A DNA stretch of 64,000 nucleotides from Isurus oxyrinchus (GCA_026770705.1 JANJGN010000121.1:372001-436000); one strand, 5' to 3'. Counted from the first letter of the stretch, positions 1,961-63,210 are shown. Notes: generated by a model from the sequence alone, not told the origin. Made by a program: numbers and translations.

Positions 1961-2257
1961 CTTGTACAGTTAGTACGAGGGTCCGCTCCGATGAAACAGA
2001 TGGATATCTCACTCTGCAGCTGAGATTGTGTCCATGGTGTTTGAGTGATGGGATCAGGGTCAGAACAGAAGTATAGGTCAGAGTGACACCATGCTGAGTT
2101 ACAGTGTTTGAGACTGATCCAGGTACGTCAGTGGGAGTGTCCCAGGTTAAGACAGGTGCTGCTGTTCCATTGCACGTTGTGTTGAAGGTGCAGCTTACAT
2201 CCACACACTTTCCTGCAATAATTTCAGCAGGGAATATCGTGGGTTTATCTGTGAAAT
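1961..2257 (-). CDS. Siglec-like gene A, C2-set Ig domain exon
   Basis: ttag|AT acceptor, CAAG|gtaagt donor, 297 nt phase 1-1, DFTDKPTIFP...SCTFNTTC...LTW...LSCRV...LTVQ. Confidence 0.9.
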
Positions 2258-3116
2258 CTAACACACAGAAAATGGATCCTTTTAGAGAAATATAACGTGA
2301 AGCATCAGTTCAAATAGAAATCACAGTCCCACAAGAGAAAGCACTTTTACAAGGATGATATCAGAACTGAGAGGTTACAATGATCAGGAAAGATTTTCTT
2401 GCTCTTTGGCAGTAGTGTTTCTGTCTCTCAGCTTAATACACGTTCACTCCGAGACATGTGAATTGAGAACACTGGATGAGAGAAGAGGCTCAGACCAGAG
2501 ATTGGAGTTAAAAGCAGAATACTGCGGATGCTGGAAATCTGAAACAAAAACAAAAATTGCTGGAAAGACTCAGCAGGTCTGACAGTATCAGTGGAGAGGA
2601 AGACAGGGTTAACGTTTCGAGTCCGTATGACTCTTCATCAGACCAGAGGTTTGAGTTCACTGGCTTCTCATTTCCTCAGTGATCTGGGTGATTTATCACC
2701 TTGTGGTTTGTTGGATCTTGCTGTGCACAAACTGCCTGCTGTGTTTTACATCTGTGACTACAATTCAGGAATAATTTAATTGGCTGTGAAGGGATTTGGA
2801 TCCTCCTGAGGTGGTAAATTGCGCTGCAGAAATGCACATCTTTCTTTTATTAATACGTCAGACTTTTAAACAGGACAGGAGAGATTGATGGGAATGGATT
2901 ACCTGATAATACAGTTAATGCTTTTCATCATTGATATTAAAGTGAGTATTAGAGGTTGCTTTAGAACTGAACTGGAAGCTATCACCAGGTTATTGAGAAT
3001 TAGACAGTGTGTTATAATATGCTGTGTTTTGTGTTAATATGTAAACGTCACAGTTTGTGTTACTTCCCATTGAGAGTTGAAAGTGAATTGTTGAGTAATT
3101 ATAACACAGCACTTAC

Positions 3117-3482
3117 CAGAAACGTGAAGCTGGGTTACAGGATAGTAGCTGTATTTATTTCTGCTGTCAAATTCTATTCTGAAAAAATAAGGTCCTTCAT
3201 CTTCCCGTCTGATGTTGTTTATAATCAGGGAACAGTCACCATCTTTCAGGTCTCCAGACAGCCGGGTCCGATGGTGGAACCGTGGTAACTCGTGACTGTG
3301 ATCCTTGGAGTGAAAGGCTATAGACGATGTTCTCCATTCCTCATTATTAAACCAGATTGCAACTCGTGGTTGCTTTTCCAAATGTGATGGATAACTGTAA
3401 TGACATGGAATCTGTACACAGGAACCTTCCTGCGCTGTCACCTCTCGTGGAGTGTCACCTTTCCACTCTTGTGACAGTCCAA
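3117..3482 (-). CDS. Siglec-like gene A, V-set sialic-acid-binding domain exon
   Basis: ccacag|TT acceptor, TCTG|gtaagt donor, 366 nt; QEW...GSCVQIPC...GDCSLIINN...GPYFFRIE...NKYSY, i.e. Siglec Cys pattern and F-strand Arg. Confidence 0.92.
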
Positions 3483-6893: not shown

Positions 6894-6933
6894 CTTGGAG
6901 AAGTGACAGGAGGAAGTAAGATTTCCCGATCAT
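6894..6933 (-). CDS. Siglec-like gene A, signal peptide exon (MIGKSYFLLSLLQ)
   Basis: ATG at 6933, 40 nt, CAAG|gtaata donor; phase 1 joins V exon as LLQ-V-GLSQEW. Confidence 0.88.
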
Positions 6934-7365: not shown

Positions 7366-7450
7366 CCAGGACCTGTCCGACTGCTCGCCTGGGGAGGAAC
7401 TGCCCACACGCTCTGCTTGGGCTGAATGACCTCTTCCTGTGCTGCTCCCT
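7366..7450 (-). other. 85-nt putative non-coding first/5'UTR exon of gene A
   Basis: Strong CTGG|gtaagt donor; homologous copy lies upstream of the leader exon in genes A, B, C and D. Confidence 0.6.
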
Positions 7451-7493
7451 CTGTGTATTTAATTAGAAAGGGCTGATGTGTCACTGTGAGATA

Positions 7494-7559: not shown

Positions 7560-10500
7560 CTGTATAAGAATATAAGAACAGAACAAGTAGGATCAGCTGG
7601 ACACCCTGACATTTTCACTCCTTATATTCCATCCACTCATTATTTTATCCACTCACGGAAACTATTTATCTCCCTCTGCAGCCTCTTTGTGTCCTCCTCA
7701 CAACCAGCTTTCCTGCCCAGCTTCTATATTTCCTACCTATCTTCACCATACAGTCAGAAAATCTGCCTACAGCACAGTCAGTCCCTTCATCCAAGTCACT
7801 AATGTAGATTGTGAATAGTTGAGGCCTCAGCACTGATCCCTGTGGCTCTCCACTAGTTACAGTTTACCAAGCTGAAAATCACCCATTTATCCTGGCTCTC
7901 TGTTTCCTGTCAGTTAGCCAGTCCTCTATCCATATTAATATATCACCCCCAACACCATTCAATTTCACCCTGTGCAGTATCCTTTGATGTGGGACCTTAT
8001 CGAAAGCCTTTTGGAAATCCAATGTCATGAAGAGATATTTGTGTGTAACGTGTGCTTGGAAATAATATTTTCAAATAGAATTCTAGTGGTGGTCCATGTA
8101 TAGGGGTATGTCTGTGTGTGTCTTAATTGGATTAAAGCCAGCTGGTCTGTGTGCTTTGATGTTTAGTAGTTTTGAGATGTTATTTGGGTGAATTGTGAGG
8201 AGAACAGTAAAGTGTTCATTTGCAATTGTTGAATAAACCATTCCAGACTGGGGGTAAAATCTTGCACCTAGTTAGAAGGAGCCAAAAGATGTGTTTTTTC
8301 TTGAACTTACTAATGAAATTGGTGCTATGAAAGGGGGTTTATTGTTCGAAGAGCTGGAGTTCAGAAGACCGAGTGATACAATGGAAAATTTACATTCAAA
8401 GGGAAAGCTAGCTATATAAAGGAAGGAGTTTGTGTGTGTGAGGCAGGAGCATTTCAGACCTAACCAGCTTGTAGCCTCCAACCAACTTGCAAAGGAACCT
8501 CATTCGGAACTCGTAATGTCAAATGTGCTTTGCCTGGTGTCTATATTATGTCAATGGTTCATTGTTGTCTTAGTAGAGATTTATGTGAGGTTGATTAATT
8601 GGGGGATTTGTTAAAAAGTTTTTATAGTAGTTATTTGTAGCCAATGTGTATGTGTTAAATTTGTTGTTAAATTAATAAATGGTTTATTTAGTTTTATATA
8701 AAAAACCCAAAATCCTCGGTGGTCTTATTCCTACTGAATTCAAAGTCTTCATCTCGAAATTACAAACAGCAAAATTGGGTTATGACAGTTGTTTCAAATT
8801 TCCCTCTGGGATTTGAACAACTCAGCCTTTACCCTTGGCTGTGTCATAGTCCCTAATACACCACGTCTACAGGTTCCACTTTATCCAATCCACTTGTTAC
8901 ATCCTCGAGGAAATCTAATAATTTTTTCAAACATCTTATCCCTTTCACAAACCCATGTTGACTCTGTCTGATTGAATTATGGATTTCTAAATGTCCTGCT
9001 GCTCCCTCCTTCATAATGAATTCTGGTATTTTCCCAATGACAGATATTAGACTAACTGACCTGTAGTTTCTTGCTTTCTGCCTCCTCCCTTTATTGAACA
9101 GAGGTGTTTCATTTATGTTTTTCCAATCCGCTGGGACCTTCCCATAATCTAAGGAATTCTGGAAGATTACAACCAATGCATCCACCGTCTCTGCAGCCAT
9201 TTCCTTTCAGACCCTCACATTCAGGCCGTCTGCTCCATGGGACTTGTCAGCATTTGTCTCATTAGTTTTCTTAATACTTTTTCTCTGGTGATAGTGATTG
9301 TTTTATGTTCCTCCCTCCTTGTTGCACCGTGACTTTCTCCTGCTATTGGGATGGTTTTAGAGATTTTTACTGTGAAGACAGACACAAAATTCTTGTTGAA
9401 AGTCTCTGTCATTTCCTTGTTTCCCATTATTAATTCCCCAGTCTGATTTTCTATGTGTCCCATTATTACTGTAGCTTCTCTCTTATTTTAATGTACAACA
9501 TCTCACTGTCATTGTTTATGGTTCTTGCTAGTTTACTCTCATATCATCATTTCTGCCTCCTTATATTTCTTCCCTCACTTTTCTGGTTTCTCAAATATTC
9601 CCAATCTCCAGCCTATCACTAAGCATCCCAACATTGCCGGCTTTATCTCACAATTGGATACCGTCCTTAGCTTCCTGAGTTAGCCGCCGATGCTCCATCC
9701 TTCTTATAGATTCTTTCTTTCTTACTGGAAAATATCTTCATTGGAATTTATGAAAGATCTCTTTAGACGCCTGTTACTCCTCATCTACCTCCATCCCCCC
9801 TTTAACCTGCTGTCCCACTCTACTTGGGCCGACTCTGCTTTTAACCCTTGTAATTGCCTTTAGTTAAGTTTATGACACTAGTTTCAGACACAAGTTTCTA
9901 AACTGAATATTAAATTTCAACACCGTATGATTACTCTTCCCTTGAGGGTCCTTTACAATGAGATGTTAATTAGTCTTGTCTCATTAAACATTGCCAGGAC
10001 TAAAACAGCCTCTTCCCTGGTTGGTTCCATGTTGCATTGTTCTAAAATACTGTTCTGAATACAATCTGTATAATCTCGCTGAAAGCTACATTTGCTAATT
10101 TGAGTTGTCTAATCCATATGACGATTGAAAACTCCCATGATTAATGTGGTGCCTTTCTCACAGACCTCCTGATGTATTGATTTATAATCTGTCCCTGCAG
10201 TGTAACTACTATCAGGGGGGAGTATAAACCAACCCTCCAGTGATTTATTTCCCTTGTAATTTCTTATATTCACCCAAACTGACTGTGCATTTTGACATCT
10301 GAGCCAAGATCATTTCTCACTATTTTACAGGTCTCAACTTTTATTAACAGAGCTACCCCACCTCCTTTTCATTTTTCCTATCCTTTCAAAGATTCCAAAT
10401 ATCCTTCAATTTTCAATTTCCAACCTTGGTCACCATGCAACCAACTCTCTGCAGTGTCCATCTTATCGTACCCATTAATCTCTATTTGTGCTATGACTTC
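7560..10500 (-). mobile_element. Degenerate CR1-clade LINE interrupted by an LTR-like insertion
   Basis: ORFs 8853-9200 (VPADWKNINETPLFNKG...NYRSVSLISV...QHGFVKG) and 9221-9463; split at 8023-8850. Confidence 0.85.
8023..8850. mobile_element. Solo LTR-like element inserted in CR1
   Basis: Starts TGTCATGA, ends ...GTGTCATA; cleanly interrupts CR1; homologous to the elements at 13625, 16523 and 19572. Confidence 0.65.
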
Positions 10501-12522: not shown

Positions 12523-12709
12523 NNNNNNNNNNNNNNNNNNNNNNNNNNNNNNNNNNNNNNNNNNNNNNNNNNNNNNNNNNNNNNNNNNNNNNNNNNNNNN
12601 NNNNNNNNNNNNNNNNNNNNNNNNNNNNNNNNNNNNNNNNNNNNNNNNNNNNNNNNNNNNNNNNNNNNNNNNNNNNNNNNNNNNNNNNNNNNNNNNNNNN
12701 NNNNNNNNN
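12523..12709. other. Assembly gap
   Basis: N run. Confidence 1.
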
Positions 12710-12896
12710 TCCGCAATGTCGCAGCATCAAGTCGTCACTGGGGAAACATTACATTCCAAACCACACCAACCGCAGACACATTCAGTCCCTTCCTCCCTCT
12801 CTCCCCCTCTCCGCCAGTGGGTTGTCTCATGTTCCAAGGAATCATAATCCCGGCCCCCACCCACAAACCTCCTCACCCCCTCTCCCCGTTTCACAC

Positions 12897-28882: not shown

Positions 28883-28922
28883 CTTGGAGAAGAGACAGGA
28901 GGAAGTAAGATTTCCCGATCAT
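28883..28922 (-). CDS. Gene B signal peptide exon
   Basis: MIGKSYFLLSLLQ, CAAG|gtaata. Confidence 0.88.
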
Positions 28923-40083: not shown

Positions 40084-40168
40084 AGGGAGCAGCACAGGAA
40101 GAGGTCATTCAGCCCAAGCAGAGCGTGTGGGCAGTACCTCCCCAGGCGAGCAGTCGGACAGGTCCTGG
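40084..40168 (+). other. 85-nt putative first/5'UTR exon of gene C
   Basis: CTGG|gtaagt donor; ETS-like ACTTCC and AP-1 TGACTCA (40041-40047) just upstream. Confidence 0.6.
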
Positions 40169-40619: not shown

Positions 40620-40659
40620 ATGATCGGGAAATCTTACTTCCTCCTGTCACTTCTCCAAG
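40620..40659 (+). CDS. Gene C signal peptide exon
   Basis: ATGATCGGGAAATCTTACTTCCTCCTGTCACTTCTCCAAG|gtaata; upstream acceptor ctttcag at 40577. Confidence 0.88.
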
Positions 40660-42164: not shown

Positions 42165-42533
42165 TTGGACTGTCACAAGAGTGGAAAGGTGACACTCCCC
42201 GAGAGGTGACAGCGCAGGAAGGTTCGTGTGTACAGATTCCATGTCATTACAGTTATCCATCACATTTGGAAAGCCAACCGCGAGGTGGAGTCTGGTTTAA
42301 TAATGAGAAACAGATTCCCTGGGCTCCCATTGCCTTTCACTCCAAGGATCACAGTCACGAGTTACCACGGTTCCACCATCGGACCCGGCTGTCTGGAGAC
42401 CTGAAAGATGGCGACTGTTCCCTGATTATAAACAACATCAGACGGGAAGATGCAGGACCTTATTTTTTCAGGATAGAATTTGACAATGGTCCGAGCCATA
42501 ACTATTACCCTGTAACCCAGCTTCACGTTTCTG
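42165..42533 (+). CDS. Gene C V-set Siglec domain exon
   Basis: 369 nt, intact; GPYFFRIE. Confidence 0.92.
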
Positions 42534-43392: not shown

Positions 43393-43689
43393 ATTTCACA
43401 GATAAACCCACGATATTCCCTGCTGAAATTATTGCAGGAAAGCGTGTGGATGTAAGCTGCACCTTCAACACAAAGTGCAATGGAACAGCAGCACCTGTCT
43501 TAACCTGGGACACTCCCACTGACGTACCTGGATCCGTCTCAAACACTGTAACTCAGCATGGTGTCACTCTGACCTATACTTCTGTTCTGACCCTGACCCC
43601 ATCACTCAAACACCACGGACACACTCTCAGCTGCAGAGTGAGATATCCATCTGTTTCATCGGAGCGGACCCTCGTACTAACTGTGCAAT
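43393..43689 (+). CDS. Gene C C2-set Ig domain exon
   Basis: 297 nt, intact splice sites. Confidence 0.9.
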
Positions 43690-43909
43690 GTAAGTACGGA
43701 CACCTTTCATTCTACATTAGCTAGAACAGTGTAGATAATGCACAGCAGGATCCCATAGAAAGGTATTCTGATGAGAATCAGATAATCTGTTTTTTAGGGA
43801 AAATAGTGACCAGAACACAATTAATAACAGTTTCTGAACAGTAACACAGCGGCTTTTATTTCCAGCCAAGAGACCGATAGAGCAGAGCAGGAATCGCAAT
43901 GTACTCACC

Positions 43910-44167
43910 CCCTGACAGTGCAGCACTCCCTCAGTACTGACCCTATGACAGTGCAGCACTCCCTCAGTACTGACCCTATGACAATGCAACACTCCCTCAG
44001 TACTGACCCTCTGACAGTCAGCACTCCCTCAGTACTGACCCTCCGACAGTGCAGCACTCCCTCAGTACTGACCCTCTGACAGTGCAGCACTCCCTCAGTC
44101 CTGACCCACTGACAGTGCAACACTCCCTCAGTAATGACCCTTTGACAGTGCTGCTCTCCCTCAGTAT
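43910..44167. repeat. 33-bp tandem repeat array
   Basis: Same unit. Confidence 0.95.
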
Positions 44168-47100
44168 TGCCTTTAAACTAAATAGATGGGGAGAGTGTTC
44201 TGGAGAGGGTATATGTAGGCTTACAAAGCAAAAGGATTTGCCAGCATTGCAGGATAGCTGTTTTGGTGATGATACCCAGTGTGTGACAGGTGGGTACACA
44301 GTGTCCAAACATTAAAATACATCAGCAAATAGAGTCAAAGGGAGGAAAATGATAAAAAGACAAAATTAATGGCTCTTGACTTAAATGCACATAGTATTTG
44401 GAACAAAATAAATGAATTAAAGGCAAAAATAGAGGTTAATGGGTTTGATCTTATAGCCATTATGGAGACATGGTTACAAGGAGATCAAAGCTTTGAAATA
44501 AATATTCAGGGGTATGTGTCTTTTCAAAAAGACAGGCAGGAAGGAAAGGTGGTGGGGTAGCTTTGTTAATAGGAGATGGAATAAGTACGAAAGCAAGAAA
44601 TGATCTTGGATCGGAGGGTATAGAATCCATATGGCTCGAGGTAATGAATAACAAGGGGAGGTAGGAACTGGTGGGAGTGGTCTATCAGCCCCATGACTGT
44701 AGCTCGGCTGTAGGACAGAGAATAAATCATGAGATAATGAGGGCATGTAAAAAAGGCAGTACATTAATCTTCATGTAGATTGGGAAAACCCAATTGGCAG
44801 AGGTAGCCATGAGCAAGAATTCATAGAGTGTATTCAAGACAGTTTCCTGGAATAATATGTCGTGGATCTAACCAGGGATCAGGCTATTTTGGATCTGGTA
44901 ATGTGTAATGAGGCAGGTTTCATACATGATCTCAGAATAAATGATCCCGTGGAAAACAGTGAACATAACCTGGTAGAATTTAGCATTCCCTCTGAGACTG
45001 AGAAACCTGGGTCGGAAACAACTGTGCTGGACTTAAATAAGTGTAATTACAAAGGAATAAGGACAGGGTTGTCTGGAGTGGACTGGGAAAGGGGTTTAGC
45101 AGAAAAGATGCTGGATGAACAAAGCAGATGTTTAAGAAAATAGCTCATGACTCACAACAAAGATATATCCCAGTGAGAAAGAAGGATTGTAGGAAGAGAA
45201 TAAACCAACCTGGGTTACCCAAAGAAGTTAAGGTGTGTGTCAAATTGAAAGAAAAAACATGCAGCACGACAAAGATTAGTGGTAAGCCAGAGGATTGAGA
45301 GAGTTTTAAAAACCAACAGAAGATGACCAAAAAATAAATAAAGAGGGAGAAAACTAGGTAAACTAGCAATTGATATAAAAAAGGACAATAAAAGCTCCTT
45401 TAAATATATAAAAAGGGAGAGAGAGACCAAAGTGTTCATAGGCCCCTTAGAGAACTAGGCTGGGGAAATAATAATGGGGAACCAGAAAATGACAGAGGAG
45501 TTGAAAAAATACTTTGCATCAGTCTTCACGGTAGAACACACTAATATCATTCCAAAAATACTAAATAATCAAGGGGCAAAAGGGGGGTGGGGAGAGGAAA
45601 TAAATACAATAACTATCACTAGAGAATAACGCTAGCGAAACTAATGGGTCTCAAGTCTGATAGGTCCCCTGGACCTGATAGGTTGCATCTTAGGATATTA
45701 AAGGAAGTAGATGCAGAGATAGTGGATGTACTGGTTTTAATCTTCCAAGAATCCTTAGATTCTGGGAAACTCCCAGAGGATTGGAAATCTGCCAAAGTAA
45801 CACCCATATTCAAAAAGGGAGGGAGACAACAAACAGGTAACTATAGGCCAGTTAGCTTAACATCTGTCATTGGGAACATGTTAGAGTCCATTATAAAGGA
45901 TGTAATAGCAGACTATTTAGAAATGCATAATTTAATCACACACAGGCTTCATGAAGGGGAAATCATGCATGACAAATTTATTAGAATTCTTTGAGGAGGT
46001 AACAAACAGGATAGATAAAGGGGAACCAGTAGATGTAATATATTTGGATTTCCAAAAGTTGTTCAGTAAAGTATCACATATAAGGCTACTTAATAAGATA
46101 AGAGCCCATGGTGATGCAGGCAGTATATTAGCATGGACAGAGGATCGGCTAACTAATAGAAGTCAGAGAGTTGGGATAAGGGGGGCATTTTCAGGATGGC
46201 AACCTGTGGAGTGCCACAGGGATCAGTGCTGGGGCCACAATTATTTACAATATATAATTAATGACTTGGATGAGGGTAATTAATGTACTATCGCCAAGTT
46301 TGTGGATGGCACAAAAATAGATGGGAAGGCAAGTGGTGAGGGTGTCACAAAGAGTCTACAGAGAGACATAGACAGGTTCAGTGAGTGGACATCAACTTGG
46401 CAGATGGAATATAATGTGGGAAAATGTGAGCTGCTGCACTGTGGCAGGATGTATAGAGGAGCTGAATATTATTTCAATGGAGAAAGACATTGGAAAGGTG
46501 AAGCATAGAGGAATTTGGGGGTCATCAGAAAGATAACATACAAGTTCAACAGTTAATAGGGAAGGCAGGTGGAATGTTGGCCTTTATTTCAAAGGGAATG
46601 GAGTATAAAAATAGGGAAGACTTGCTAAAACTTTACAAGGCACTAGTTAGACCACACCTAGAATACTGTGAGCAGTTTTGGTTCCCTTATCTAAGGAAAG
46701 ATGTACTGGCATTGGAGGCAGTCCAGAGAAGGTTCACTAGGTTGATCTCAGTAATGGAGGGATTTTCATATGAGGAGAGGTTGAGTAGGATGGGCCTGTA
46801 CTCATTGGAGTTTAGGAGAATGAGAGCTGACCTTATTGAAACATATAAGATTCTTAGGGTGCTTGACAGGGTAGATGCTGAGAGGTTGTTTCCCCTTGTG
46901 GGAGAGTCTAGGACCAGAGGGCATAATCTCAGAGTAAGGGGTCACCCATTTAAGACAGAGATGAGGAGTTTCTTCTCTCAGAGGGTAGTGAATGTGTGGA
47001 ATTCTTTACTGCAGAGAGCTGCAGAGGCTGGGTCATTAATTATATTCAAGGCTGAGATACACAGTTTTTTAATCAGTCAGGGAATCAAAGGCTATGGGGA

Positions 47101-47222
47101 AGAGGCAGGAAAGTTGAGTTGAGGATTGTCAGATCAGCCATGGTGTCATTGAATGGCGGAGCAGAGTTGATTGGCCGAATGGCCTCCTTCTGCTCTGACG
47201 TCTTGTGGTCTTATGGTCTTAT
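44168..47222 (+). mobile_element. Near-complete CR1 ORF2 (endonuclease plus RT, disrupted) with 3' tail, inserted in a 33-bp array
   Basis: LNAHSIWNK...DLIAIMETW (APE); NYRPVSLTSV; YLDFQK; LYKALVRPHLEYC; TCTTATGG-type tail. Confidence 0.92.
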
Positions 47223-47223
47223 C

Positions 47224-48468
47224 ACCCTCCGACAGTGCAGATCTCCCTAATTACTGACCCTCCAACAGTGCAGCACTCCCTCAGTACTGACCCTCTGGCA
47301 GTGCAGCATTCCCTAAGTATTGACCCTCCAACAGTGCAGCACTCCCTCAGTACTGACCCTCCAACAGTGCAGAGCTCCCTAATTACTGACCCTCCGACAG
47401 TGCAGCACTCCCTCAGTACTGACCCTCCGACAGTGCAGCATTCCCTAAGTACTGACCCTCCGAGAGTGCAGCACTCTTCCAGTACTGGCCCTCCAACAGT
47501 GCAACACTCCCCTAGTACTGACCCTCCAACAGTGCAGCACTCCCTCAGTACTGACCCTCCAACAGTGCAGCACTCCCTCAGTACTGACCCTCTGACAGTG
47601 CACCACTCCATCAGTACTGACCCTCCGACAGTGCAGCACTCCCTCAGTACTGATCTTCCAACAGTGCAGCAGTCCATCAGTACTGACCCTCCGACAGTGC
47701 ACCACTCCCTCAGTCCTGATCCTCCAACAGTGCAGCACTCCCTCAGTACTGATCCTCCAACAGTTCAGCACTCCCTCAGTACTGATTCTCTGACAGTGAA
47801 GTACTTGCTCAGTACTGACTATGCGGCAGTGCAGCTTTCACAGTACCTGCCCTCCAACAGTGCAGCAGGTCATCAGTACTCACGCGCCAAGAGGGCAGCT
47901 CTCCCTCAGTACTGACCCTCCCACAGTGCAGCACTACCTCAGTACTGACCCTCCAACAGTGCAGCAATCCATCAGTACTGACCCTCCAACAATACAGCAC
48001 TCCCTCAGTACTGAACTGAAGTGTCTGCCTGAATTAAGTGCTTTGTGGTGAAGGAACCTACATTGATATCACACCTTTCACATTCTCAGGGTCCCTCTTC
48101 AGTACTGACCCTCTGACAGTGCAGCATTGCTTCAGTACTGACTCTCTTACAGTGCAGCACTCCCTCAGTACTGACCCTCTGACAGTGCAGCACTCCCTCA
48201 ATACTGACCCTCTGACAGTGCAGCATTGCTTCAGTACTGACCCTCTGACAGTGCAGCACTCCCTCAGTACTGACCCTCTGACAGTGCAGCACTCCCTCAG
48301 TACTGACTCTCTGACAGTGCAGCACTCCCTCAGTACTGACCCTCTGACAGTGCAGCACTCCCTCAGTACTGACCCTCTGACAGTGCAGCACTCCCTCAGT
48401 ACTGACCCTCTGACAGTGCAGCACTCCCTCAGTACTGACCCTCTGACAGTGCAGCACCTCTTCAGTAC
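47224..48468. repeat. 33-bp tandem repeat arrays (47224-48012 and 48095-48468)
   Basis: Same unit. Confidence 0.95.
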
Positions 48469-49477
48469 AGGGTCCTGAATCTTTGGAAGTCTCTCCTTAA
48501 TCCTTGGGTGTGGAGGATCTCAGAGACTCTCATGTAATTGAGAAGTCACCATGAGCACAGCAGCAGTCAGAATAGACAGATCTACAACCCAACACTCACA
48601 CTTGCTGCACAGTTTCACCACCAAACCACAAGAATTAAGCAAACTGGCTGAAAATAAAGATGACAATTCAGCCTGTGTGGAAAGGTCAGAAGTTTATTGT
48701 TTCCTGTTTGTCTCTGATCTGCAGTGCAGATAAATATTAGAAAACCACAGAATCAAACAGCACAGAAAGAGGCCACTCAGCCCATTGTCCCTGTCCTGGT
48801 CTCCTGGGACAGATATCCAATTGGTCCCAATCTCCCATTCTCTCACACTCCGCAAGTATTTTGAAAGATCCTATTGAATCTGCTTCCACCGCCCTTTCAG
48901 GCAGCACCTTCCAGATCACAGCAACTCGCTGTGCACAATAAAACCTAACCTGCCTGCTCAGTGATGGTTACTCCCATCTGAGGGGATTTATATTCATGAA
49001 TTTGGATTCAATCTGGAACAGGAAGAATTTGAAGGACGATGGGGGAAGAGAGGTGGATTGAAACCAATTGTGTGCTTCTTTTAAAGAGCTAGCACAGCCA
49101 AGATGGCATGAATGGCCTCCTGCTATTCTGTGTGATTCTGTGATATGATGAAGAAAGTTCCTTTTCAGCAACAGTTTACCTCTTCTGCTGAAACTCTTCA
49201 TGTTGGAGAAGAGGAAGTGATGGTTTCCATCAGCGTTTAGTTTGTGTTCCAGTTCAGTTTTAACCGAAACTCAGTGAAGCGGATGGTGAAGGTCATGAAC
49301 CCACCACAGCGGCACCTCCAACACATGCAGAGCTCAGGCTAGAGGCGCTTTGTTAGTGTGTTTCACAGGGTCTGCTGGAGTAGGGTCAGTGCTGAGCTTG
49401 GGGACAAGTCAGTCTACAATGCTGCATCGGAATCAACAATACAACAATATGGGGTTTGGATCAGAAATAATTTGATC

Positions 49478-49893
49478 CTCTGACAGTGCAGCACTCCCTC
49501 AGTACTGATTCTCCAACAGTGCAGCACTCCCTCAGTACTGACCCTCTGACAGTGTGTGTTCCAGTTCAGTTTTAACCGAAACTCAGTGAAGCGGTTCTGA
49601 TCCTCCAACAGTGCAGCACTCCCTCAGTACTGATCCTCCAACAGTTCAGCACTCCCTCAGTACTGATTCTCTGACAGTGAAGTACTTGCTCAGTACTGAC
49701 TATGCGGCAGTGCAGCTTTCACAGTACCTGCCCTCCAACAGTGCAGCAGGTCATCAGTACTCACGCGCCAAGAGGGCAGCTCTCCCTCAGTACTGACCCT
49801 CTGACAGTGCAGCACTACCTCAGTACTGACCCTCCAACAGTGCAGCACTCCATCAGTACTGACCCTCCAACAATACAGCACTCCCTCAGTACT
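49478..49893. repeat. 33-bp tandem repeat arrays, partly duplicated from ~47720-48012
   Basis: Same unit and same diagnostic variants. Confidence 0.9.
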
Positions 49894-50025
49894 GAACTGA
49901 ATTGTCTGCCTGAATTAAGTGCTTTGTGGTGAAGGAACCTACATTGATATCACACCTTTCACATTCTCAGGGTGTCTCAAAGCGTTTCACAGTCAATGTA
50001 AGTAATGATCTTTATTTGTTTTCAG

Positions 50026-50307
50026 ACACACCACAGAATCTCTCAATTAATTCTCTTGATATGATTAACGCTTCATCAATCAATATAATTGAGGGGAATT
50101 CTGCAGTGATAATCTGCTCCGTCGAGAGCTTCCCAGCTTCTAACCTGACGTGGCGACATCTTAATGTCCCAATGAACAGAACAAGTTCCAACAATGAGCT
50201 GTGGTTGGTGATTCCTCACGTTACATCCAGGGACACTGGAGACTATCAGTGTGTGGCAGAGAATGAACATGGAGCAGTGGAGGGGTTCATAACCATCACT
50301 GTGGAAC
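50026..50307 (+). CDS. Gene C third Ig domain exon
   Basis: 282 nt, ttttcag|AC ... GAAC|gtgagt; DTGDYQCVAEN. Confidence 0.9.
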
Positions 50308-51573: not shown

Positions 51574-51670
51574 GGCGAGATTCCAATGAATGGAAAGCAG
51601 GATTGCTTGGAGCTGGAATCTGTTTGAGTGTTGGACTGAGTGGATTCTTCATCTTCAAGTGTGTGAGAAA
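51574..51670 (+). CDS. Gene C transmembrane exon (RDSNEWKAGLLGAGICLSVGLSGFFIFKCVRK)
   Basis: ttttacag|GG ... GAGAAA|gtaagt, 97 nt, paralogous to the gene B TM exon. Confidence 0.88.
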
Positions 51671-52424: not shown

Positions 52425-52509
52425 AGGGAGCAGCACAGGAAGAGGTCATTCAGCCCAAGCAGAGTGTGTGGGCAGTTCCTCCCCAGGCGAGCAGTTGGAC
52501 AGGTACTGG
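52425..52509 (+). CDS. Gene C putative first cytoplasmic exon (GSSTGRGHSAQAECVGSSSPGEQLDRYW), a copy of the 85-nt exon
   Basis: 85 nt gives phase 2->0, the bridge needed between the TM exon and 53024; open frame; acceptor is weak. Confidence 0.5.
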
Positions 52510-53023: not shown

Positions 53024-53128
53024 AAGAGAGGCGAGGTGAAAGCAGGAATTAAATCGAACCATCGTGTTGATGAATATCGAGGTCCTGTTTATGAAAACTG
53101 TGAGCGTGGTTGGGCTTTGAGGAATCAG
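53024..53128 (+). CDS. Gene C cytoplasmic exon (KRGEVKAGIKSNHRVDEYRGPVYENCERGWALRNQ)
   Basis: tctattacag|AAG ... CAG|gtgagt, 105 nt phase 0-0, Tyr motif VYENC. Confidence 0.7.
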
Positions 53129-53261
53129 GTGAGTCACACACCACAGGATCCCCAGCCTCTCAGCTGCTCCAGTAGCCTGGTTATTGATATGGCTGCTCCA
53201 GTCCTGTATCTGCAATGTTTTATACAGTCACTCCCAAACCCAACCAAACTCACACCCAACA

Positions 53262-54503
53262 CCGTTCAGAATCAATAATCAAACCCCGTTCAGTATCAAT
53301 AATCAAACCCCGTTCAGTATCAATAATCAAACCCCGTTCAGTATCAATAATCAAACCCCGTTCAGAATCAATAATCAAACCCCGTTCAGAATTAATAATC
53401 AAACACCGTTCAGAATCAATAATCAAACCCCGTTCAGTATCAATAATCAAACCCCTTTCAGAATCAATAATCAAACACTGTTCAGAATCAATAAACAAAC
53501 CCCGTTCAGTATCAATAATCAAACTCCGTTCAGGTTCAATAATCAAACACCGTTTAGAATCAATAATCAAACCCCGTTCAATGTCAATAATCAAACCCCA
53601 TTCAGTATCAATAATCAAACTCCTTTCAGAATCAATAATCAAACCCAGTTCAGTATCAATAATCAAACCCAGTTCAGTATCAATAATCAAACCCCTTTCA
53701 GGATCAATAATCAAACTCCGTTCAGGATCAATAATCAAACACCGTTCAGTATAAATAATCAAACCCTGTTCAGTGTCAATAATCAAAACCCGTTCATAAT
53801 CAATAATCAAACCCCGTTCAGTATCAATAATCAAAACCCGTTCATAATCAATAATCAAACCCCGTACAGTATCAATAATCAAACCCCGTTCAGAATCAAT
53901 AATCAAACCCCGTTCAGTGTCAATAATCAAACCCCGTTCAGTATCAATAATCAAAACTCGTTCATAATCAATAATCAAACCCCGTACAGTTTCAATAATC
54001 AAACCCCGTTCAGAATCAATAATCAAACCCCGTTCAGTGTCAATAATCAATCCCCGTTCAGTATCAATAATCAACCCCCGATCAGTATCAATAATCAACC
54101 CCCGTTCAGTATCAATAATCAAACCCCGTTCAGTATCAATAATCAACCCCCGTTCAGTGTCAATAATCAAACCCCATTCAGTAACAATAATCAAACCCCG
54201 TTCAGTATTAATAATCAAACCCCGTTCAGTATCAATAATCAAACCCCGTTCAGTATCAATAATCAAACCCCGTTCAGAATCAATAAACAAATCCCATTCA
54301 GTATCAATAATCAAACCCCGTTCAGTATCAATAATCAAACCCCGTTCAGTATCAATAATCAAACCCCGTTCAGTATCAATAATCGAACCCCGTTCAATAT
54401 TAATAATCAAACCCCGTTCAGTATCAATAATCAAACCCTGTTCAGTATCAATAATCAAACCCCATTCAGTGTCAATAATCAAACCCTGTTCAGTGTCAAT
54501 AAT
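53262..54503. repeat. 24-bp minisatellite (~50 copies)
   Basis: Unit ATCAATAATCAAACCCCGTTCAGT. Confidence 0.98.
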
Positions 54504-54599
54504 TAATGTATGTATTGTGGGTGGAATTTTCGATTTGGATCAATAATACTAAACACTGATCACTCTGATTGTCACTGATCATTTCTGTTTCTATTACAG

Positions 54600-54716
54600 A
54601 AGAAAGATGAGAAGGATCTGGAAATGAAATCTAACCGCGGAGTCAATCCTGATACAGATGATGATCTTTACGCAAACTGTGATTTTGCCAAGGATTCTGT
54701 GTATGGGAATTTATAA
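54600..54716 (+). CDS. Gene C terminal cytoplasmic exon (KKDEKDLEMKSNRGVNPDTDDDLYANCDFAKDSVYGNL*)
   Basis: ttacag|AAG acceptor, phase 0; SVYGNL fits the ITIM consensus S/I/V/LxYxxL. Confidence 0.8.
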   Translation, partial: KKDEKDLEMKSNRGVNPDTDDDLYANCDFAKDSVYGNL

Positions 54717-56036
54717 ACTGAGCAAGAATGAGACACACACAGTGTGGGGAGAATACAGAATGGGAGAATCATTCAAAACTCCAATTTACCTTCCTAATAT
54801 CCACAGGAACTCACTCCCAGGAAATAGATTTAAACCTCTTGTTACAATCTGATGGAATTTCTTCGGAATGATCTATCCAGGATGGTTGTCTGTGGGTTTC
54901 AATTCGAACATCCTCCTTCAGAATTGTCCCTCACTGTTGGAAACATCCTTCTCTCCATTCTGATTGTAAATGTCTTTAGATATCATTCGATGATGTACCA
55001 GGACATAACGGACAAATTCAATCCCGTGTCCGTGATTAAGAGTTAATTTTCATTCTGTTATTCACCTTCCTGTCTGTCAGTGTTTAGAATATTCATCAGC
55101 CAGTGCAGACTTCAGGAAATGCAGGATCGGTGGATAATTGGAACAGAGGAGATTGGTAAAATTTACACCATTTTGTAGTCAAATGTATTTTCAGAAATAT
55201 ATTTGGATTTTACACTTCATTGTTAAACAGCGAAACGAACAACAATCTGGGATACAATTTGATTGGAGATTTGAGAAATTCTCTGCAGCTTAGAAGATAA
55301 CATGTGCTACAGTGCCACCAATGATGGGAGTTCATCAGTACAACGTGACATGTTTACATTGATATAGCCAATGAACATTGGAAATTATGATGTGAAAATT
55401 TGGTTGCAGGTTTATCTTCTTCAATATGTCATGGATGGATGAGACAGCTTTGATAACAGAATGAGATATAGCTGCAATAAACCACAATTTTAGTCCTTCA
55501 CACTTGGAGAGTACATTTAGCATCCATCCTGAAGGCTGAGTGGATGGGTGGACTGTGCGATGTGTTACAGATTACAGAGACCAACATCCTTGATCAGTAT
55601 TCCGCTCTGTGTTTGATGAGATGCTTGGATCAAAGATTGGGAAAATAAATAATCCTCCTGCATTGATCTATAACTGGTCTCTCCCTCTATCAGTGTCCTG
55701 AGGACAGAATTGGGTTCGATGTCCAAAATCAGACACATGCTTTGACTGCCCATTGAATAGGAACAGGAGGAGGTCATTCAGCCCCCTCGAGCCTGCTACA
55801 CAGGAACAAGAGAGCACCTGAAATAAAAACAGAAAATGCTGGAGAAACTGAGTAGGTCTGGCAGCATCTGTGCAGAGATAAACAGAATAATCATTTCGAG
55901 TCCGTATGACCCTTCTTCAGAGTCTATAAGCAAAAACTCTGTTTCTCTCTCCACAGCTGCTGCCAGACCTGCTGAGTTAATGCAGCATTTTCTGTTTTTA
56001 TTTCAGATTTACAGCATCTGCAGTATTTATTTTTAA

Positions 56037-56720
56037 TGAGAGGAGGACATTCAGCACCTGAGCCTGTTACACAGGAACAGGAGGAGGCCCATTCAGCCTC
56101 CTTGGGCCTGTTACACAGGAACAGCAGGAGGCCCATTCAGCACCTGAGCCTGTTACACAGGAACAGGAGAAGGCCCATCAGCCTCATGAGCCTATTACAC
56201 AGGAACAGGAAGAGGCCATTCAGTCTCTCAACACCCTTCAACAGGAACAGGAGAGACTCTCAGCCCCTCGAGCCTGTTACACAGGAAAAGGAGGAGTCCT
56301 ATTCAGCCCCATAGAGCCTGTAACACAGGAACAAGAGGAGGCCATTCAGTCACATTAGCCTGTTATCCAGGAACAGGAAGAGCACATTCAGTCTCTCAAC
56401 CCTCTTACACAGGAATAGGAAACCCATTCAGCCCCTTGAGCCTGTTACACAGGAAGAGGAGGAGGCCCATTCAGCCCCCTCGAGCCTGTTACACAGGAAC
56501 AGGAGGAGGCCCATTCTGTCCCCTCGAGCCTGTTACACAGGAAGAGGAGGAGGCCCATTCACCCTCCTCGAGCCTGTTACACAGGAACAGGAGGAGGCCC
56601 ATTCTGTCCCCTTGAGCCTGTTTCACAGGTACAGGAGACCCATTCAGCCTCCACAAGCTTGTTACACAGGAACTTTAGGGGCTCCATTCAGCCACTCAAG
56701 CCTGTTCCACAAGAACAGGA
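56037..56720. repeat. 43-44-bp minisatellite
   Basis: Same unit as 35068-35851; resumes at 57575-57790. Confidence 0.92.
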
Positions 56721-56721
56721 G

Positions 56722-57574: not shown

Positions 57575-57790
57575 CTCGAGCCTGGTACACAGGAACTGGG
57601 GAAGGCCAATTCAGCCCCTTTAGCCTTTTACACAGGAACAGGAGGAGGCCCACTCAGCCCCTCGAGCCTATAACACAGGAACAGGAGGAGGCCCATTCAG
57701 CCCCCTCAAGCCTGTTACACAGGAATAGGAGGAGGCCCATTCAGCCCCATCAAGCCTGTTACACAGGAACAGGAGGAGGCCCATTCAGCC
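57575..57790. repeat. 43-44-bp minisatellite, continuation
   Basis: Same unit; last unit fuses into the 85-nt exon (donor at 57844). Confidence 0.9.
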
Positions 57791-57917
57791 CAAGCAGAGC
57801 GTGTGGGCAGTTCCTCCCCAGGCAAGCAGTCAGACAGGTCCTGGGTAAGTAACGGATCGATTGGAAATCACGGGGGAAGTTCTGAGGGCTCCTAACACAT
57901 TGTCCTGTCTTCTAAAT

Positions 57918-58200: not shown

Positions 58201-60628
58201 CTGGGGAGTTTCAGTCTACTCTGTGGGGCAGACGTCCCCTGAATGGGGTCTTGAATCCCACAATGTTCAGAGCCCCTGAATTTGGCTGTGAAACCCACTG
58301 ACCCACAGGAGAAACTCCTGGTCAATGACTGTCCACCTCTGAGCAGAAATATCACCACAGAGTCAGGACACAAACGGTTAACAGTTCACCAAGATCTCAA
58401 AACATGAGCGTCTTGAGGTGGTGAAAGGTGCTATAGAAATGCAAATCCTTCAATGTTCTTCTTTCTTAAAGCCTTGTAACTCTCTGCAGAGCACCTATCA
58501 TCCCACAGAGAATCAAATTAGTCTGTGAAGACATTGTCTAAAAGCAGTTCTGATCTCTCGAGAGCATTCGGACAAGAGGTGACGTCTCATTAACTCCTTT
58601 CTCTTTCACAGCTTGAGAGTGAGAAGTGGATGGAATATCTGGGAGTGGACGATGATCGGGAAATCTACTTCCTCTTGTCACTTTCCCAAGGTAATATCAT
58701 CATCAGCTCAGACAGAATTATGTTTAACAGTCTTTGTAAAAGATCATTCTTATCTCTTAATCTCTGAAACCTCCTGCAACTCAACCAAACAACTTCCCAG
58801 ATCTCTGTGTTACTGCAATTCCGGCCTCTTGACCATCCCCCGATTCCCATCAATCCAATACTGGCGGCCGTGCCTTCAGCTGCCTGGGGCCTGAGCTCTG
58901 GAATTCACTCCCTAAACCTCGGGGATGGAGGAGATCAGAGGGTTTCATTTTACTGACAATCACCACGGCCACATCACAGCTGCAGTGAGAATAGACAGAG
59001 AGTCCAGCCCTCACTCTTCCTGCACAGTTTCACCATAGCAACCACAATATGGAAATTTAAAAATACTGAAAGTTAAACCGAAACCAAGCCAGTCAGTTTA
59101 GAGAGATGAGATGTTTACACAGTTTCTCTGTGTATCTTGTAGACACTGTGTTGGGTGGAAGACTGGCTTCACTAAACAGGGTCCTGAGGACCATGAGCCA
59201 ATGTAGAATGAACTTGTCCACTCCTGTGTCCAGGATTCTCTTCCATCCATTGTGAAACCTTGGGGAGTTCCATGTGTGTCCTGTAGATGGTCCACACTGC
59301 AGCCACTGTGCCCCAGTGATGGAGGGGGTGGATATCGAGTCTAGTGGATCTACAAACCTTCCAGAGTTAAATATTGATATTTCTCTCCCCACTTGGACTG
59401 TCACAAGAGTGGAAAGGCGACACTCCACGAGAGGTGGCAGCGCAGGAAGGTTCCTGTGTACAGATTCCATGTCATGACAGTTAATCATCACATTTCGTAG
59501 GGAGATCACGTGTCGGAATCTGGTTGACAGGAATAGATGGGAACCCTACAGCCTAAATGGTCTATAGCCTTTCACTCCGAGGGTCACAGTCACAGGGATC
59601 AAAGATTCCGCCATCGTACCCGGCTGTCTGGAGACCTGAAAAATGGCGACTGTTCCCTGATTATAAACAACATCAGACGGAAAGATGCAGGACCTTATTT
59701 TTTTCAGAATAGAATTTGACAGCAGGAATAGTTAAAGCTACTATCCTGTAACCCAGCTTCACGTTTCTGGTAAGTGCTGTGTTATAATTACTCAACAATT
59801 CACATTCAACACTCAATGGGAAATAACACAAACTGTGACGTTTACATATTAACACAAAACACAGCTTATTATAACTTGCTATCTGATTCTCAATAACCTG
59901 GTGATAGCTTCCAGTTCAGCCCTAAAGCAACCTCTAATACTCACTTTAATATCAATGATGAAAAGCATTAACTGTATTATCAGGTTATCCATTCCCATCA
60001 ATCTCTCCTGTCCTGTTTAAAAGTCTGACGTATCGATAAAAGAAAGATGTGCATTTCTGCAGCGCAATTTACCACCTCAGGAGGATCCAAATCCCTTCAC
60101 AGCCAATGAAATTATTCCTGAATTGTAGTCACAGATGTAAAACACAGCAGTCAGTTTGTGCACAGCAAGATCCAACAAACCACAATGTAATAAATCACCC
60201 AGATCACTGAGGAAATGAGAAGCCAGTGAACTCAAACCTCTGGTCTGATGAAGAGTCATACAGACTTGAAACGTTAACCCTGTCTTCCTCTCCACTGATA
60301 CTGTCAGACCTGCTGAGTCTTTCCAGCAATTTTTGTTTTTGTTTCAGATTTCCAGCATCCGCAGTATTCTGCTTTTAACTCCAATCTCTGGACTGAGCCT
60401 CTTCTCTCATCCAGTATTCTCAATTCACATGTCTCGGAGTGAACGTGTATTAAGCTGAGAGACAGAAACACTACTGCCAAAGAGCAAGAAAATCTCTCCT
60501 GATCATTGTAACCTCTCAGTTCTGATATCATCCTTGTAAAAGTGCTTTCTCTTGTGGGACTGTGATTTCTATTTGAACTGATGCTTCACGTTATATTTGT
60601 CTAAAAGGATCCATTCTCTGTCTGTTAG

Positions 60629-60925
60629 ATTTCACAGATAAACCCACGATATTCCCTGCTGAAATTATTGCAGGAAAGCGTGTGGATGTAAGCTGCACCT
60701 TCAACACAACGTGCAATGGAACAGCAGCACCTGTCTTAACCTGGGACACTCCCACTGACGTACCTGGATCAGTCTCAAACACTGTAACTCAGCATGGTGT
60801 CACTCTGACCTATACTTCTGTTCTGACCCTGATCCCATCACTCAAACACCACGGACACACTCTCAGCTGCCGAGTGAGATATCCATCTGTTTCATCGGAG
60901 CGGACCCTCGTACTAACAGTGCAAG
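60629..60925 (+). CDS. Gene D C2-set Ig exon (still intact)
   Basis: 297 nt, open, ttag|AT ... CAAG|gtaatt. Confidence 0.65.
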
Positions 60926-63070
60926 GTAATTACATACACCTTTCATTCTACATCAGCACTCCCTCAGCGCAGACCCTCTGACAGTGCAGCCCGTTCTCAG
61001 TGTCCACATTCTAAGGCCTCTCTAAGTGCTTCAAAGTCGATAGAATTTAATTGATCTTTATTTGATTATTGCTGAATGAAGAGACAAGCTGTCTAAACTT
61101 TACATCTCGCACACACCATTCTCCATGGCAACACCTCCACCTATCAGAGTCCACTTGCCAACCAATCAGCACTCTCTTCCCATTAAGTATAAATTGTTGT
61201 TCACTTTCTGTTGATAATCCTGTGAACGGGCTTCTTGATTCCTGCCATGACATCTGAATGTCCAAATGAACAGAACAAGTTCCAACAATGAGCTGTGGTT
61301 GGTGATTCCTCATGTTACATCCAGGGACACTGGAGACTATCAGTGTGTGGCAGAGAATGAACATGGAGCAGTGGATGGGTTCATAACCATCAGTGTGGAA
61401 CGTGAGTTACACAGACTTCAACATCTCTCTCAGATTTGAACACTACACAAACACCATCGAACATACACACCTAAATAGACACGTGCAGACACACATATAT
61501 GACCACACACAAAGACACACTCACACACAAACACTAACACTCACTCCCTCATGGGTTACCTGACCTCCCTCAGTACTGCACTGGAGAGTTGGCCTGAATT
61601 CTGGGATTTGTGTTCCCATTCATATTTATGGAAGAATATGGAAATTACTATTACAGACACTCAGATGCATAGAGGCTCTCACAGATACTCTCTGCGTCTC
61701 CAACTCTCTCTCTCCTTTTAAGAAGCTTCCTGAAACCTAACCCTTTGACGAATCACCAACCTAATTCTTCCTTATCTGATTCTGTGTGATTTTCTTTGTG
61801 TATCTGAGAGTAAGAGAGAGTTGGAGAGGTTTAGGAAGAGAATTCCTGCTGGTGAAAAGCTTACATAATGTTCTCACTATTTCCGTGCACATAATTCCCA
61901 TTATGTGCAATGCCCCTGTTTATAATGATGACTGCCTATGTAAACGTCACGCTGTAGTTACAGCCTCCCACCAGTGGTGGCATTGTAGCCCTTCATCCTT
62001 GTGTTTCCCAGCTTTCCCAGCAACTCCACTTCCCAGTTTGCTATACAAGCTGTGAGTTCATCGGAATTCAATTATTTCTCAAACGGTAGATTTGATGTCA
62101 TTTTATTGAAAACTTCCTCAGCGCCTCCCTGAAGGGTTTACACTCTCTGGGAAGCAGGAATAGGCTGGATGTTGGGGAGTTCATCTTTTCCCAGAGAGCA
62201 GTGATCCTCGGGAATGTGCTGTCAGTGGGTGTGGTGGTTGCTGTTTCTCTGTCGCCTTCAAGAGGGATCTGGAGTGGTTACTGACTGGGGGAGAGATCAT
62301 GGAAGCGGAGAATGATACAGCACAGGAGGAGGCCATTCAGCCCATTGAGCCTGTGCCAGGTCTTTCAATGTTCTATCCCATCAGATCCACTAACCACCAC
62401 TCCACTTTGCCCCCATCTTCCTCCTTCAAGTGTTTATCCAATTTCCCTTTTGAAAGTTCCTATTGAATCTGCTTCCACTGCCCTTTCAGGCAGAACCTTC
62501 CAGATCACAACAACTCGCTCTGTCAAAACAAATTCTCCTCATCTCCCCCTCCGGTTCGTCAATCTGTGTCCCTCTGGTTACCGACCCTCCTGCCCCTTAA
62601 ATACATCGATACTGTTCACCTCGACCACTCCCTGTGGGAGCGAGTTCCACATTCTCCCCTCTCTCTGGGTAAAGATTGGAACTGTTTATTAAGCGGGGGG
62701 TGTAAGTCCATGGGGGAGTCCATCTCGATCTTGCCCGATTCGCACACGCGTCCGAGATGGATTTCTACCCTGCACTAAACGTTTCCAGAATTTTCTACAG
62801 CACAATCCTGTACACAGCGATGGAGAGAAACATTGGACAGGGAGTCCAACAGCACAATGATCCATTCTCACCAATGTTCCACGCTAAGGGGAAAGTTCCG
62901 ATTGTCCACTCTTAGAGTGTTTACAATGAAAACATTCATTCCACATTGAATCCCAGTGGATGGGTCAATATTACAGCAAATGTTGCAGTGATATGAAGCT
63001 TGATTGTTCAGCCAGAGTGAGAGATTGAAAGCGGAGAGTCAGTGATGATTTCTTTCTGTGTGTTCTCTAG

Positions 63071-63210
63071 ACAGTGGAGGAGAGATTCTGCACGTGATCC
63101 TGATCCTGGGAATACGAGCTGTGATATTCCTTGTGGCTGTGGTTATCACTATCGCTGGAGTCTGTGTCTGGGAGAGACAAACAGTGAAAGGAAGTCGACA
63201 GACTGTTTGA
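63071..63210 (+). CDS. Activating-type TM and short-tail exon (SGGEILHVILILGIRAVIFLVAVVITIAGVCVWERQTVKGSRQTV*)
   Basis: Long pyrimidine tract ...ttctctag|AC, phase 1, hydrophobic helix with Arg (CGA 63115-63117), stop after 12 residues; not in the ORF track. Confidence 0.82.

Follow-up and report, generated by a model that had tools for sequence, protein, structure and literature searches.

The stretch analysed here, 64,000 nt from the shark Isurus oxyrinchus (GCA_026770705.1 JANJGN010000121.1:372001-436000; hereafter the window), carries four paralogous blocks, each with a V-set and a C2-set immunoglobulin (Ig) exon, which were found by comparing the window with itself. The corresponding genes are called A to D (table 1), with B then A on the minus strand and C then D on the plus strand; a head-to-head arrangement is formed by B and C, 27998-30113 being an inverted match of 41524-39403. 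[quoted passage not shown] A, B and C would each encode a signal peptide, a V domain of the sialic-acid-lectin type and a C2 domain, to which B and C would add a third Ig domain as well as an uncharged membrane span (for a Glu in the B exon see below), whereas D would be a decayed copy, possibly transcribed, that retains its C2 exon and an exon for an arginine-containing transmembrane segment (the Arg-transmembrane exon). At the DNA level the blocks of A, C and D are the most similar (A and C 94.9%, A and D 94.0%, C and D 93.8%), identity to B being lower (84-91% overall; A and B 86-87%, B and C 89-91%).

Exon models of the cluster

The exon models were checked exon by exon in homology searches, and the true leader exon was located via the N-termini of shark homologues. 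This exon, MIGKSYFLLSLLQ, is 40 nt long with a phase-1 donor and occurs in exactly four copies, one per gene. A hydrophobic frame at 41227-41493, MQSSGERRFVSVFHSVCW, was also considered as the leader and rejected, as its copy in B contains a stop codon and surplus copies are found in introns; the match of the homologue N-termini to MIGKSYFLLSLLQ at 40620 further rules it out.

The B model, comprising the leader, V, C2, third Ig (Ig3), transmembrane, 82-nt cytoplasmic and terminal exons, amounts to 1413 nt or 471 codons, and the C model (leader, V, C2, Ig3, transmembrane, 85-nt, 105-nt and final exons) to 1392 nt (464 codons, counting the stop). In both models all internal sites are AG/GT, the phases fit and there are no in-frame stops. 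A preliminary description of the window, made from the sequence alone, had arrived at 471 and 463 amino acids for B and C, sums that we could reproduce, and the leader, V and C2 exons that it assigned to A, B and C are indeed intact in each of these genes. It also spoke of four paralogues with near-identical ectodomain exons; four pairs of V and C2 exons do exist, but those of D are decayed and not near-identical. The C2 exon of A is distinguished by an extra cysteine (AGKCVDV), the same place being occupied by Arg in B, C and D. When the 3' exons of A were sought in positions 1-1960, which hold two assembly gaps, no homology was found, only a fragment of a long interspersed nuclear element (LINE) and satellite sequence.

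Runs of N interrupt the window four times (1303-1572, 1604-1793, 12523-12709 and 21456-21825). The last of these lies inside the intron of B between the Ig3 and transmembrane exons, 8 nt past the Ig3 donor (exon end 21834) and 97 nt ahead of the transmembrane exon (21359), with both flanking junctions in phase 1, and the third is situated 3' of the stop codon (12900) in the last tail cassette of B; neither interrupts an exon. The intron of C that matches the gapped one of B is 1266 nt long and contains no exon recognised by homologues.

The V domain and its relatives

By sequence and fold, the V domains of A, B and C are Siglec-type. In a phmmer search of PDB with the V exon of C, the 17 best sequences were all Siglecs (E-values of 7e-16 to 5e-12), these relatives being Siglec-5, -7, -8, MAG (3.5e-14), CD33, Siglec-10 and sialoadhesin; the next family, pIgR, followed at 1e-8, and CD22 structures matched weakly (3e-5). 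The V exon passes the Pfam cut-offs for V-set and PF24518 (CD22-like first Ig domain), the second exon is recognised as C2-set and the third as Ig_3/I-set. A model of the V domain predicted with AlphaFold2 from 33 homologues reached a mean predicted local distance difference test score of 92.9, and in a Foldseek search with this model the 45 best PDB neighbours were all Siglec V domains, with TM-scores (a measure of fold similarity) of 0.80-0.88 (MAG 0.88).

The alignment places the interdomain cysteine of Siglecs in GSC, the B-strand cysteine in IPC, the E-strand cysteine in GDCSL and the essential Arg of Siglec-5 and -7 in GPYFFRIE; the respective residues (C21, C26, C84 and R102) show little or no variation among the 33 homologues. 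C26 and C84, aligned with cysteines of Siglec-5 and -7 and invariant among the homologues, would form the intrasheet B-E disulfide, and the F strand (YFFR) has no cysteine, as expected with a B-E instead of the canonical B-F pair. C21 corresponds to a cysteine of Siglec-5, and its predicted interdomain partner, the third cysteine of the C2 domain (TFNTTC), is present in all four copies. R102, found in GPYFFRIE of A, B and C and near-invariant in the homologues, aligns with the Arg of GSYFFRVE in Siglec-5 and GRYFFRME in Siglec-7; the copy of this Arg in D is located in a broken V exon.

A homologue search covering 1.8 billion representative sequences yielded 33 matches below 1e-30. The named close homologues are all RefSeq or GenBank models from sharks or rays (Carcharodon, Cetorhinus, Mustelus, two species of Scyliorhinus, Chiloscyllium, Hypanus, Hemitrygon and Narcine), and almost all of them bear the label Siglec-8/12/13/14 or CD33-like. 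The family has already been predicted by automatic annotation; the nearest homologue is a great white shark model (91% identity in V). We inferred a tree of V domains (159 rows, 126 columns, quick search, automatic names), in which A, B and C fall into a clade of 38 rows supported by a Shimodaira-Hasegawa-like approximate likelihood-ratio test (SH-aLRT) value of 95, together with an electric-ray protein (94). A separate clade of 41 rows (99) consists of CD33-related proteins of turtle, lizard, frog, caecilian and mammals, shark MAG-like proteins form a third branch, and the three branches join weakly (84). The separation of the shark clade from the tetrapod CD33-related clade indicates an expansion specific to elasmobranchs; a quick tree of so few columns with automatic names does not settle the deep relations. 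The Siglec cysteines and F-strand Arg that the preliminary description had read in A, B and C, its assignment of Siglec-type receptors to a cartilaginous fish and its suggestion of an independent expansion all agree with these analyses.

The copies do not diverge evenly. The C2 exons are 96-99% identical, with dS (synonymous divergence) of 0.013-0.054 as compared to 0.11-0.21 for V, and they are also more alike than the flanking DNA, which suggests gene conversion. The whole-exon ratio of non-synonymous divergence (dN) to dS in V, 0.41-0.66, gives no overall signal of positive selection. The differences between the V domains are concentrated in two patches, residues 47-54 and 106-111, which we take to be the C-C' and G-strand regions, on which the specificity of Siglecs depends. 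Many of the homologous models (P0001, P0003, P0004, P0005 and P0006) have two to four V domains in a row, placed ahead of one C2 domain or directly ahead of Ig3; such a layout is not known from mammalian Siglecs, apart from Siglec-12.

Signalling ends and the decay of gene D

Three kinds of C-terminal ends are encoded in the window. The tail of B ends with a distal motif, TEYAQI, that fits TxYxxI, whereas its proximal motif, LYANPQV, which is the same in the great white shark model, has Pro at position Y+3 and so lies outside the consensus of the immunoreceptor tyrosine-based inhibitory motif (ITIM) given in PMC7226832. In other sharks the proximal motif reads LLYANI or LLYINV. Tails of this bipartite, CD33-type design are found in sharks (…LLYANINF…TEYAQIRF), in members of the tetrapod clade (LHYASL…TEYSEI) and in the bowfin (MPYASIDF…TDYAEV), and the design is thus common to jawed vertebrates. 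Once phosphorylated, the B tail would recruit SH2 phosphatases and damp signalling. Downstream of the single transmembrane exon of B, a block of about 3 kb is present three times in tandem (12710-21154, minus strand; 85-94% identity), each of these cassettes having an intact 82-nt exon and an intact terminal exon with TEYAQI; it is the third that is closest to the great white shark protein (84%). The Glu in the transmembrane exon of B is unusual for a receptor with tyrosine motifs, since it puts a charge into the membrane span.

In C, the transmembrane exon is followed by the 85-nt exon, an optional exon with YENC and a final exon ending in DLYANCDFAKDSVYGNL, an order backed by Carcharodon XP_041037180, whose transmembrane exon is 97% identical, and by a Chiloscyllium protein. 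The tail contains three tyrosines in YxN context (YENC, YANC and SVYGNL), presumably fitting the Grb2 SH2 motif, and the last of them is part of a consensus ITIM, SVYGNL (SxYxxL). The C tail is thus probably inhibitory or adaptor-binding as well, and unlikely to represent a third polarity; it would bind an adaptor or a phosphatase. The 85-nt exon recurs approximately 430-450 nt upstream of the leaders of A, B and C; the splice-acceptor context of the coding exon is preserved at 40084, and shorter copies are found at 35980-36072 and upstream of D; the upstream copies may be an exon of the 5' untranslated region or a relic carried along by duplications. An orphan copy of the final exon between B and C belongs to a block (33762-35127) duplicated from 54492-55812 and has no transmembrane or Ig exons upstream of it.

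The third end is provided by the Arg-transmembrane exon, which specifies a span with an Arg in its central to outer part, followed by a tail of 12 residues without Tyr, and which would pair with an ITAM (immunoreceptor tyrosine-based activation motif) adaptor; a search for the adaptor DAP12 in cartilaginous fish gave nothing usable. It is 85% and 80% identical to the C-termini of the Scyliorhinus torazame models P0085 and P0006, respectively, and 52% identical, over 86 amino acids, to Chiloscyllium P0022. These three are full-length Siglec models of other sharks, and the same type of exon also terminates proteins with other V domains. A word-index protein search with the 48-residue Arg-transmembrane region of P0006 gave seven candidates and two matches, both from Scyliorhinus torazame, but it is too insensitive to tell the distribution of the exon. 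The three ends named in the preliminary description are therefore all present, and homologous proteins carry each of them. Its finer reading of the two tyrosine tails needs amending: the tail of B, described as resembling an immunoreceptor tyrosine-based switch motif, does have TEYAQI but with a degenerate proximal ITIM, and the C tail, described as unrelated, differs from that of B but ends in a consensus ITIM.

Gene D is a pseudogene. Its leader, owing to the deletion, reads MIGKSTSSCHFPK and ends in the wrong phase, and from its own ATG all later exons are out of frame. In the V exon the acceptor AG has changed to AC, a substitution has created the first in-frame stop (59482), several indels have added a net 8 nt (377 versus 369 nt), and the mismatch to C is 15%; half of the Ig3 exon has been replaced. 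Intact are only the C2 exon (dN of 0.009 to B and C) and the Arg-transmembrane exon. As D is the sole gene in the window with an activating end, an intact inhibitory/activating pair is absent here: both intact complete genes, B and C, bear tyrosine-motif tails, and an intact ectodomain combined with a basic transmembrane residue and a short tail is found in P0006, P0022 and P0085, not in the window. The paired cluster envisaged in the preliminary description thus stands in so far as linked genes join the same type of ectodomain to different modules, but one member of the pair is broken; pairing is a property of the family, not of this locus, where it is only a relic.

The region 58500-63300 was compared with the contigs of four runs, three of them presumed to be RNA and one DNA (X7), and joints were searched up to a distance of 6 kb. 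A GT..AG joint from 59769 to 60629 (V to C2) was found in run X5 and one from 60925 to 63071 (C2 to Arg-transmembrane) in both X17 and X5, each in exact agreement with the exon models; at the latter joint the C2 exon ends in AAG, which is the D/A type, versus AAT in C. X5 agrees with the window across the whole Arg-transmembrane exon, and one of its contigs, of 144 nt, is a unique exact match to the C2 haplotype of D among the four copies. A transcript of the type V-C2-Arg-transmembrane is supported, deriving from D or a near-identical paralogue; the check by spliced RNA proposed in the preliminary description has thus brought out both joints, though not their origin in D. At positions 59437, 60599, 60871 and 61313, all other covering runs (DNA and RNA-type, from two organisms) differ from the window, and the letters of the assembly there are either variants private to the individual or base errors.

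Several points weigh against our reading of the window as a cluster of Siglec-type genes with a dead activating copy. Binding of sialic acid is predicted from conserved residues only, and the C2-Ig3-transmembrane links in B and C are proposed from phase fit and homologues; Ig3 is absent from the great white shark models, and a further exon may hide in the gap 21456-21825. As to D, the single-base indels (the leader deletion and an extra T at 59698) could, taken alone, be assembly errors. X5 has the paralogue-consensus letter at two positions private to D (60599 and 60871); the joints, with only 21-24 letters on one side, are too short to tell D from a near-identical paralogue; and the RNA support is at the level of contigs from runs whose RNA status was guessed, contigs being unable to give expression levels.

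One could thus suppose that D is a working activating receptor and a true partner of its neighbours, its lesions being mistakes in an assembly with gaps or variants peculiar to the sequenced individual. The open and conserved C2 and Arg-transmembrane exons, the joints with their AAG end, the exact match of the 144-nt contig and the private letters of the assembly at 59437, 60599 and 60871 would accord with such a view. However, at least six independent lesions would have to be explained away (the leader deletion, the AC acceptor, the stop at 59482, the multi-base indels, the 15% divergence of V and the half-replaced Ig3), and these are too many and too varied to be assembly errors taken together. 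Moreover, the DNA run X7 covers the V exon without a listed disagreement at the acceptor or the first stop, and two thirds of its depth retain the extra T; a leader joined to V occurs in a single contig (X17), but this leader is intact and differs from that of D, so that the contig comes from a paralogue. We consider a functional D very unlikely.

It is similarly improbable that a neighbour (C, at a distance of 8.4 kb upstream, or a copy resembling A) uses the Arg-transmembrane exon as an alternative 3' exon, although this exon has remained intact, with 80-85% identity to catshark C-termini, in a gene of which three other exons have decayed, and it occurs spliced in RNA-type contigs. Furthermore, Chiloscyllium P0022 joins Ig3 to an exon of this type with a Tyr codon at the junction, and the phase base T of the C2 exon of C would likewise give Tyr. 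On the other hand, Ig3 of C ends in C and would give His at this junction, the C2 end of the observed joint (AAG) is not that of C, C is already provided with a terminal exon and a stop further upstream, and D may simply be a recent pseudogene; a joint from Ig3 of C to the exon would exceed the 6-kb limit of the search. A bolder version, in which the Arg exon has outlived its dead host by being spliced by an intact neighbour, and in which the ITIM/TEY design together with tail swapping dates to the ancestor of jawed vertebrates, is in our opinion a long shot; were it correct, a single ectodomain could receive an inhibitory end in some products and an activating one in others.

Finally, the B and C models might wrongly chain pieces of different genes or relics, which would turn the different tails on the same ectodomain into an artefact; the presence of a duplicate of 37145-39799 (at 47224-49895) within the 6.3-kb C2-Ig3 intron of C, the LINE pieces in the C2-Ig3 introns of both C (44.3-47.1 kb) and B (24.6-25.8 kb) and the great white shark models without Ig3 could be cited in favour, but we give this little credence, given that the true leader has four copies only and none between C2 and Ig3, that the phases fit throughout, that Mustelus and Chiloscyllium models include Ig3 between C2 and the transmembrane or tail exons, and that C2 would join the transmembrane exon in frame (both phase 1) even without Ig3, as it does in Carcharodon XP_041037177 (V-C2-transmembrane-cytoplasmic 1-TEYAQI) and XP_041037180 (V-C2-transmembrane-85-nt-final).

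Comparison with known Siglecs and the sequence surroundings

The reading of the window as an elasmobranch Siglec cluster with a decayed activating copy can be set against better-known systems. With the mammalian CD33-related Siglecs (CD33, Siglec-5, -7 and -9) the shark genes share the V-set domain with its predicted B-E disulfide, interdomain cysteine and YFFR Arg, one or two further Ig domains, a single membrane span and, in sharks and members of the tetrapod clade alike, the bipartite tail with LxYAxx followed by TEYxxI/V. They differ in that the V domains form an elasmobranch clade of their own, the proximal ITIM of B is degenerate, and the family includes a second type of tail (YxN, SVYGNL) as well as multi-V proteins.

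Paired Siglecs are encoded by genes in close linkage; their binding domains are nearly identical, whereas their signalling is opposite (PMC13358205). The shark locus resembles the primate pairs Siglec-5/14 and Siglec-11/16 in the linkage of its genes (84-95% DNA identity of the V plus C2 blocks, within 62 kb), in the opposition of tyrosine-motif genes to a gene with a basic transmembrane residue and a short tail, and in near-identical C2 exons, as gene conversion would give. Unlike in the primate pairs, the reference sequence has the activating-type gene in the form of a pseudogene, there are three tail modules instead of two, and the Arg-transmembrane exon is conserved as a module in its own right, found at the end of proteins with other V domains too. 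The broken D has a parallel in humans, where null alleles of the activating partners SIGLEC14 and SIGLEC16 are common.

MAG (Siglec-4) is among the best sequence and fold matches, the V exon passes the Pfam model for a first Ig domain like that of CD22 (Siglec-2), and YxN tyrosines like those of the C tail occur in CD22. However, these proteins have five and seven Ig domains, respectively, as opposed to two or three here, and the shark MAG-like proteins sit on a separate branch. According to PMC7226832, which covers bony fish only and does not mention sharks or cartilaginous fish, fish regularly have only Siglec-1, CD22, MAG and Siglec-15, the last being a conserved activating member with a basic transmembrane residue, and lack CD33-related inhibitory Siglecs. 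The shark family is thus of the short, ITIM/TEY-tailed type said to be missing from fish, here expanded into clusters. No paper on Siglecs of sharks, rays or cartilaginous fish was found in the searchable literature.

Judging from this locus and the named homologues, sharks and rays own a large family of short Siglecs with the CD33-type tail design, some members of which use a charged-anchor exon, and modular on/off signalling by Siglecs is, on this evidence, not an invention of mammals. The locus is also a natural example of the turnover of a receptor cluster, with inverted and tandem duplication, homogenisation at the level of exons and the death of an activating copy.

Table 1. Exons, relics and repeats in the window. 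Positions are counted from the first nucleotide of the window.
Feature	Position	Strand	Remarks
A leader exon	6894-6933	-	MIGKSYFLLSLLQ; phase-1 donor GT; matches N-termini of shark homologues
A V-set exon	3117-3482	-	366 nt, open; Siglec Cys pattern and YFFR Arg
A C2-set exon	1961-2257	-	297 nt; remainder of gene outside the window
B leader exon	28883-28922	-	intact
B V-set exon	27564-27932	-	369 nt, open
B C2-set exon	26341-26637	-	
B Ig3 exon	21834-22115	-	complete; donor GTGAGTTA abuts gap 21456-21825
B transmembrane exon	21263-21359	-	Glu in LLAEIFIF where homologues have Gly
B cytoplasmic exon 1	20460-20541	-	82 nt; more copies at 17592-17673 and 14516-14597; homologous models P0002 and P0013 join transmembrane, cytoplasmic 1 and terminal exons
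B terminal exon	18849-19094	-	…EFLYANPQV…TEYAQIRFEHN, stop; more intact copies at 15783-16028 and 12900-13145
C leader exon	40620-40659	+	
C V-set exon	42165-42533	+	369 nt; 91% amino acid identity to Carcharodon CD33-like model
C C2-set exon	43393-43689	+	
C Ig3 exon	50026-50307	+	Ig_3/I-set
C transmembrane exon	51574-51670	+	uncharged; 97% identity to Carcharodon P0016
C cytoplasmic 85-nt exon	52425-52509	+	copies also upstream of leader exons
C cytoplasmic 105-nt exon	53024-53128	+	PVYENC; equivalent in Chiloscyllium P0007, none in Carcharodon P0016
C final exon	54600-54716	+	…DLYANCDFAKDSVYGNL, stop
D leader relic	58652-58690	+	39 nt; 1-nt deletion after 58665; signal peptide destroyed
D V pseudo-exon	59393-59769	+	377 nt; acceptor AC; stops from 59482
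D C2 exon	60629-60925	+	open frame intact
D Ig3 relic	61251-61400	+	3' half only; stop just upstream
Arg-transmembrane exon	63071-63210	+	activating type; (D)SGGEILHVILILGIRAVIFLVAVVITIAGVCVWERQTVKGSRQTV, stop
85-nt exon copies	7366-7458 (-), 29349-29441 (-), 35980-36072 (+), 40084-40168 (+), 57779-57844 (+)		coding copy at 52425-52509 (+)
Orphan C-type final exon	33872-33988	+	intact; …DLYANCEFAEDSVYGNL, stop; between B and C
Satellite stretches	29716-30355, 36163-38396, 39403-39800, 43901-44166, 47224-48468; 35067-35852, 56040-56721; 53258-54503		
Retroelement debris	25392-25796 (+), 44333-47119 (+), 353-898 (+), 8856-9487 (-), 30694-32952 (+)		

Much of the intergenic and intronic space is occupied by three satellite families, with units of 33 nt (up to 68 copies), 44 nt and 24 nt (52 copies), which generate long spurious open frames on both strands. 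Remains of retroelements, reverse-transcriptase pieces among them, are found within as well as between the genes. A Pfam scan of ten repeat-derived open frames returned weak matches to aspartyl proteases below the cut-offs, in a retrovirus-like stretch, and a single match above the cut-off, to RVT_1 (25392-25796).

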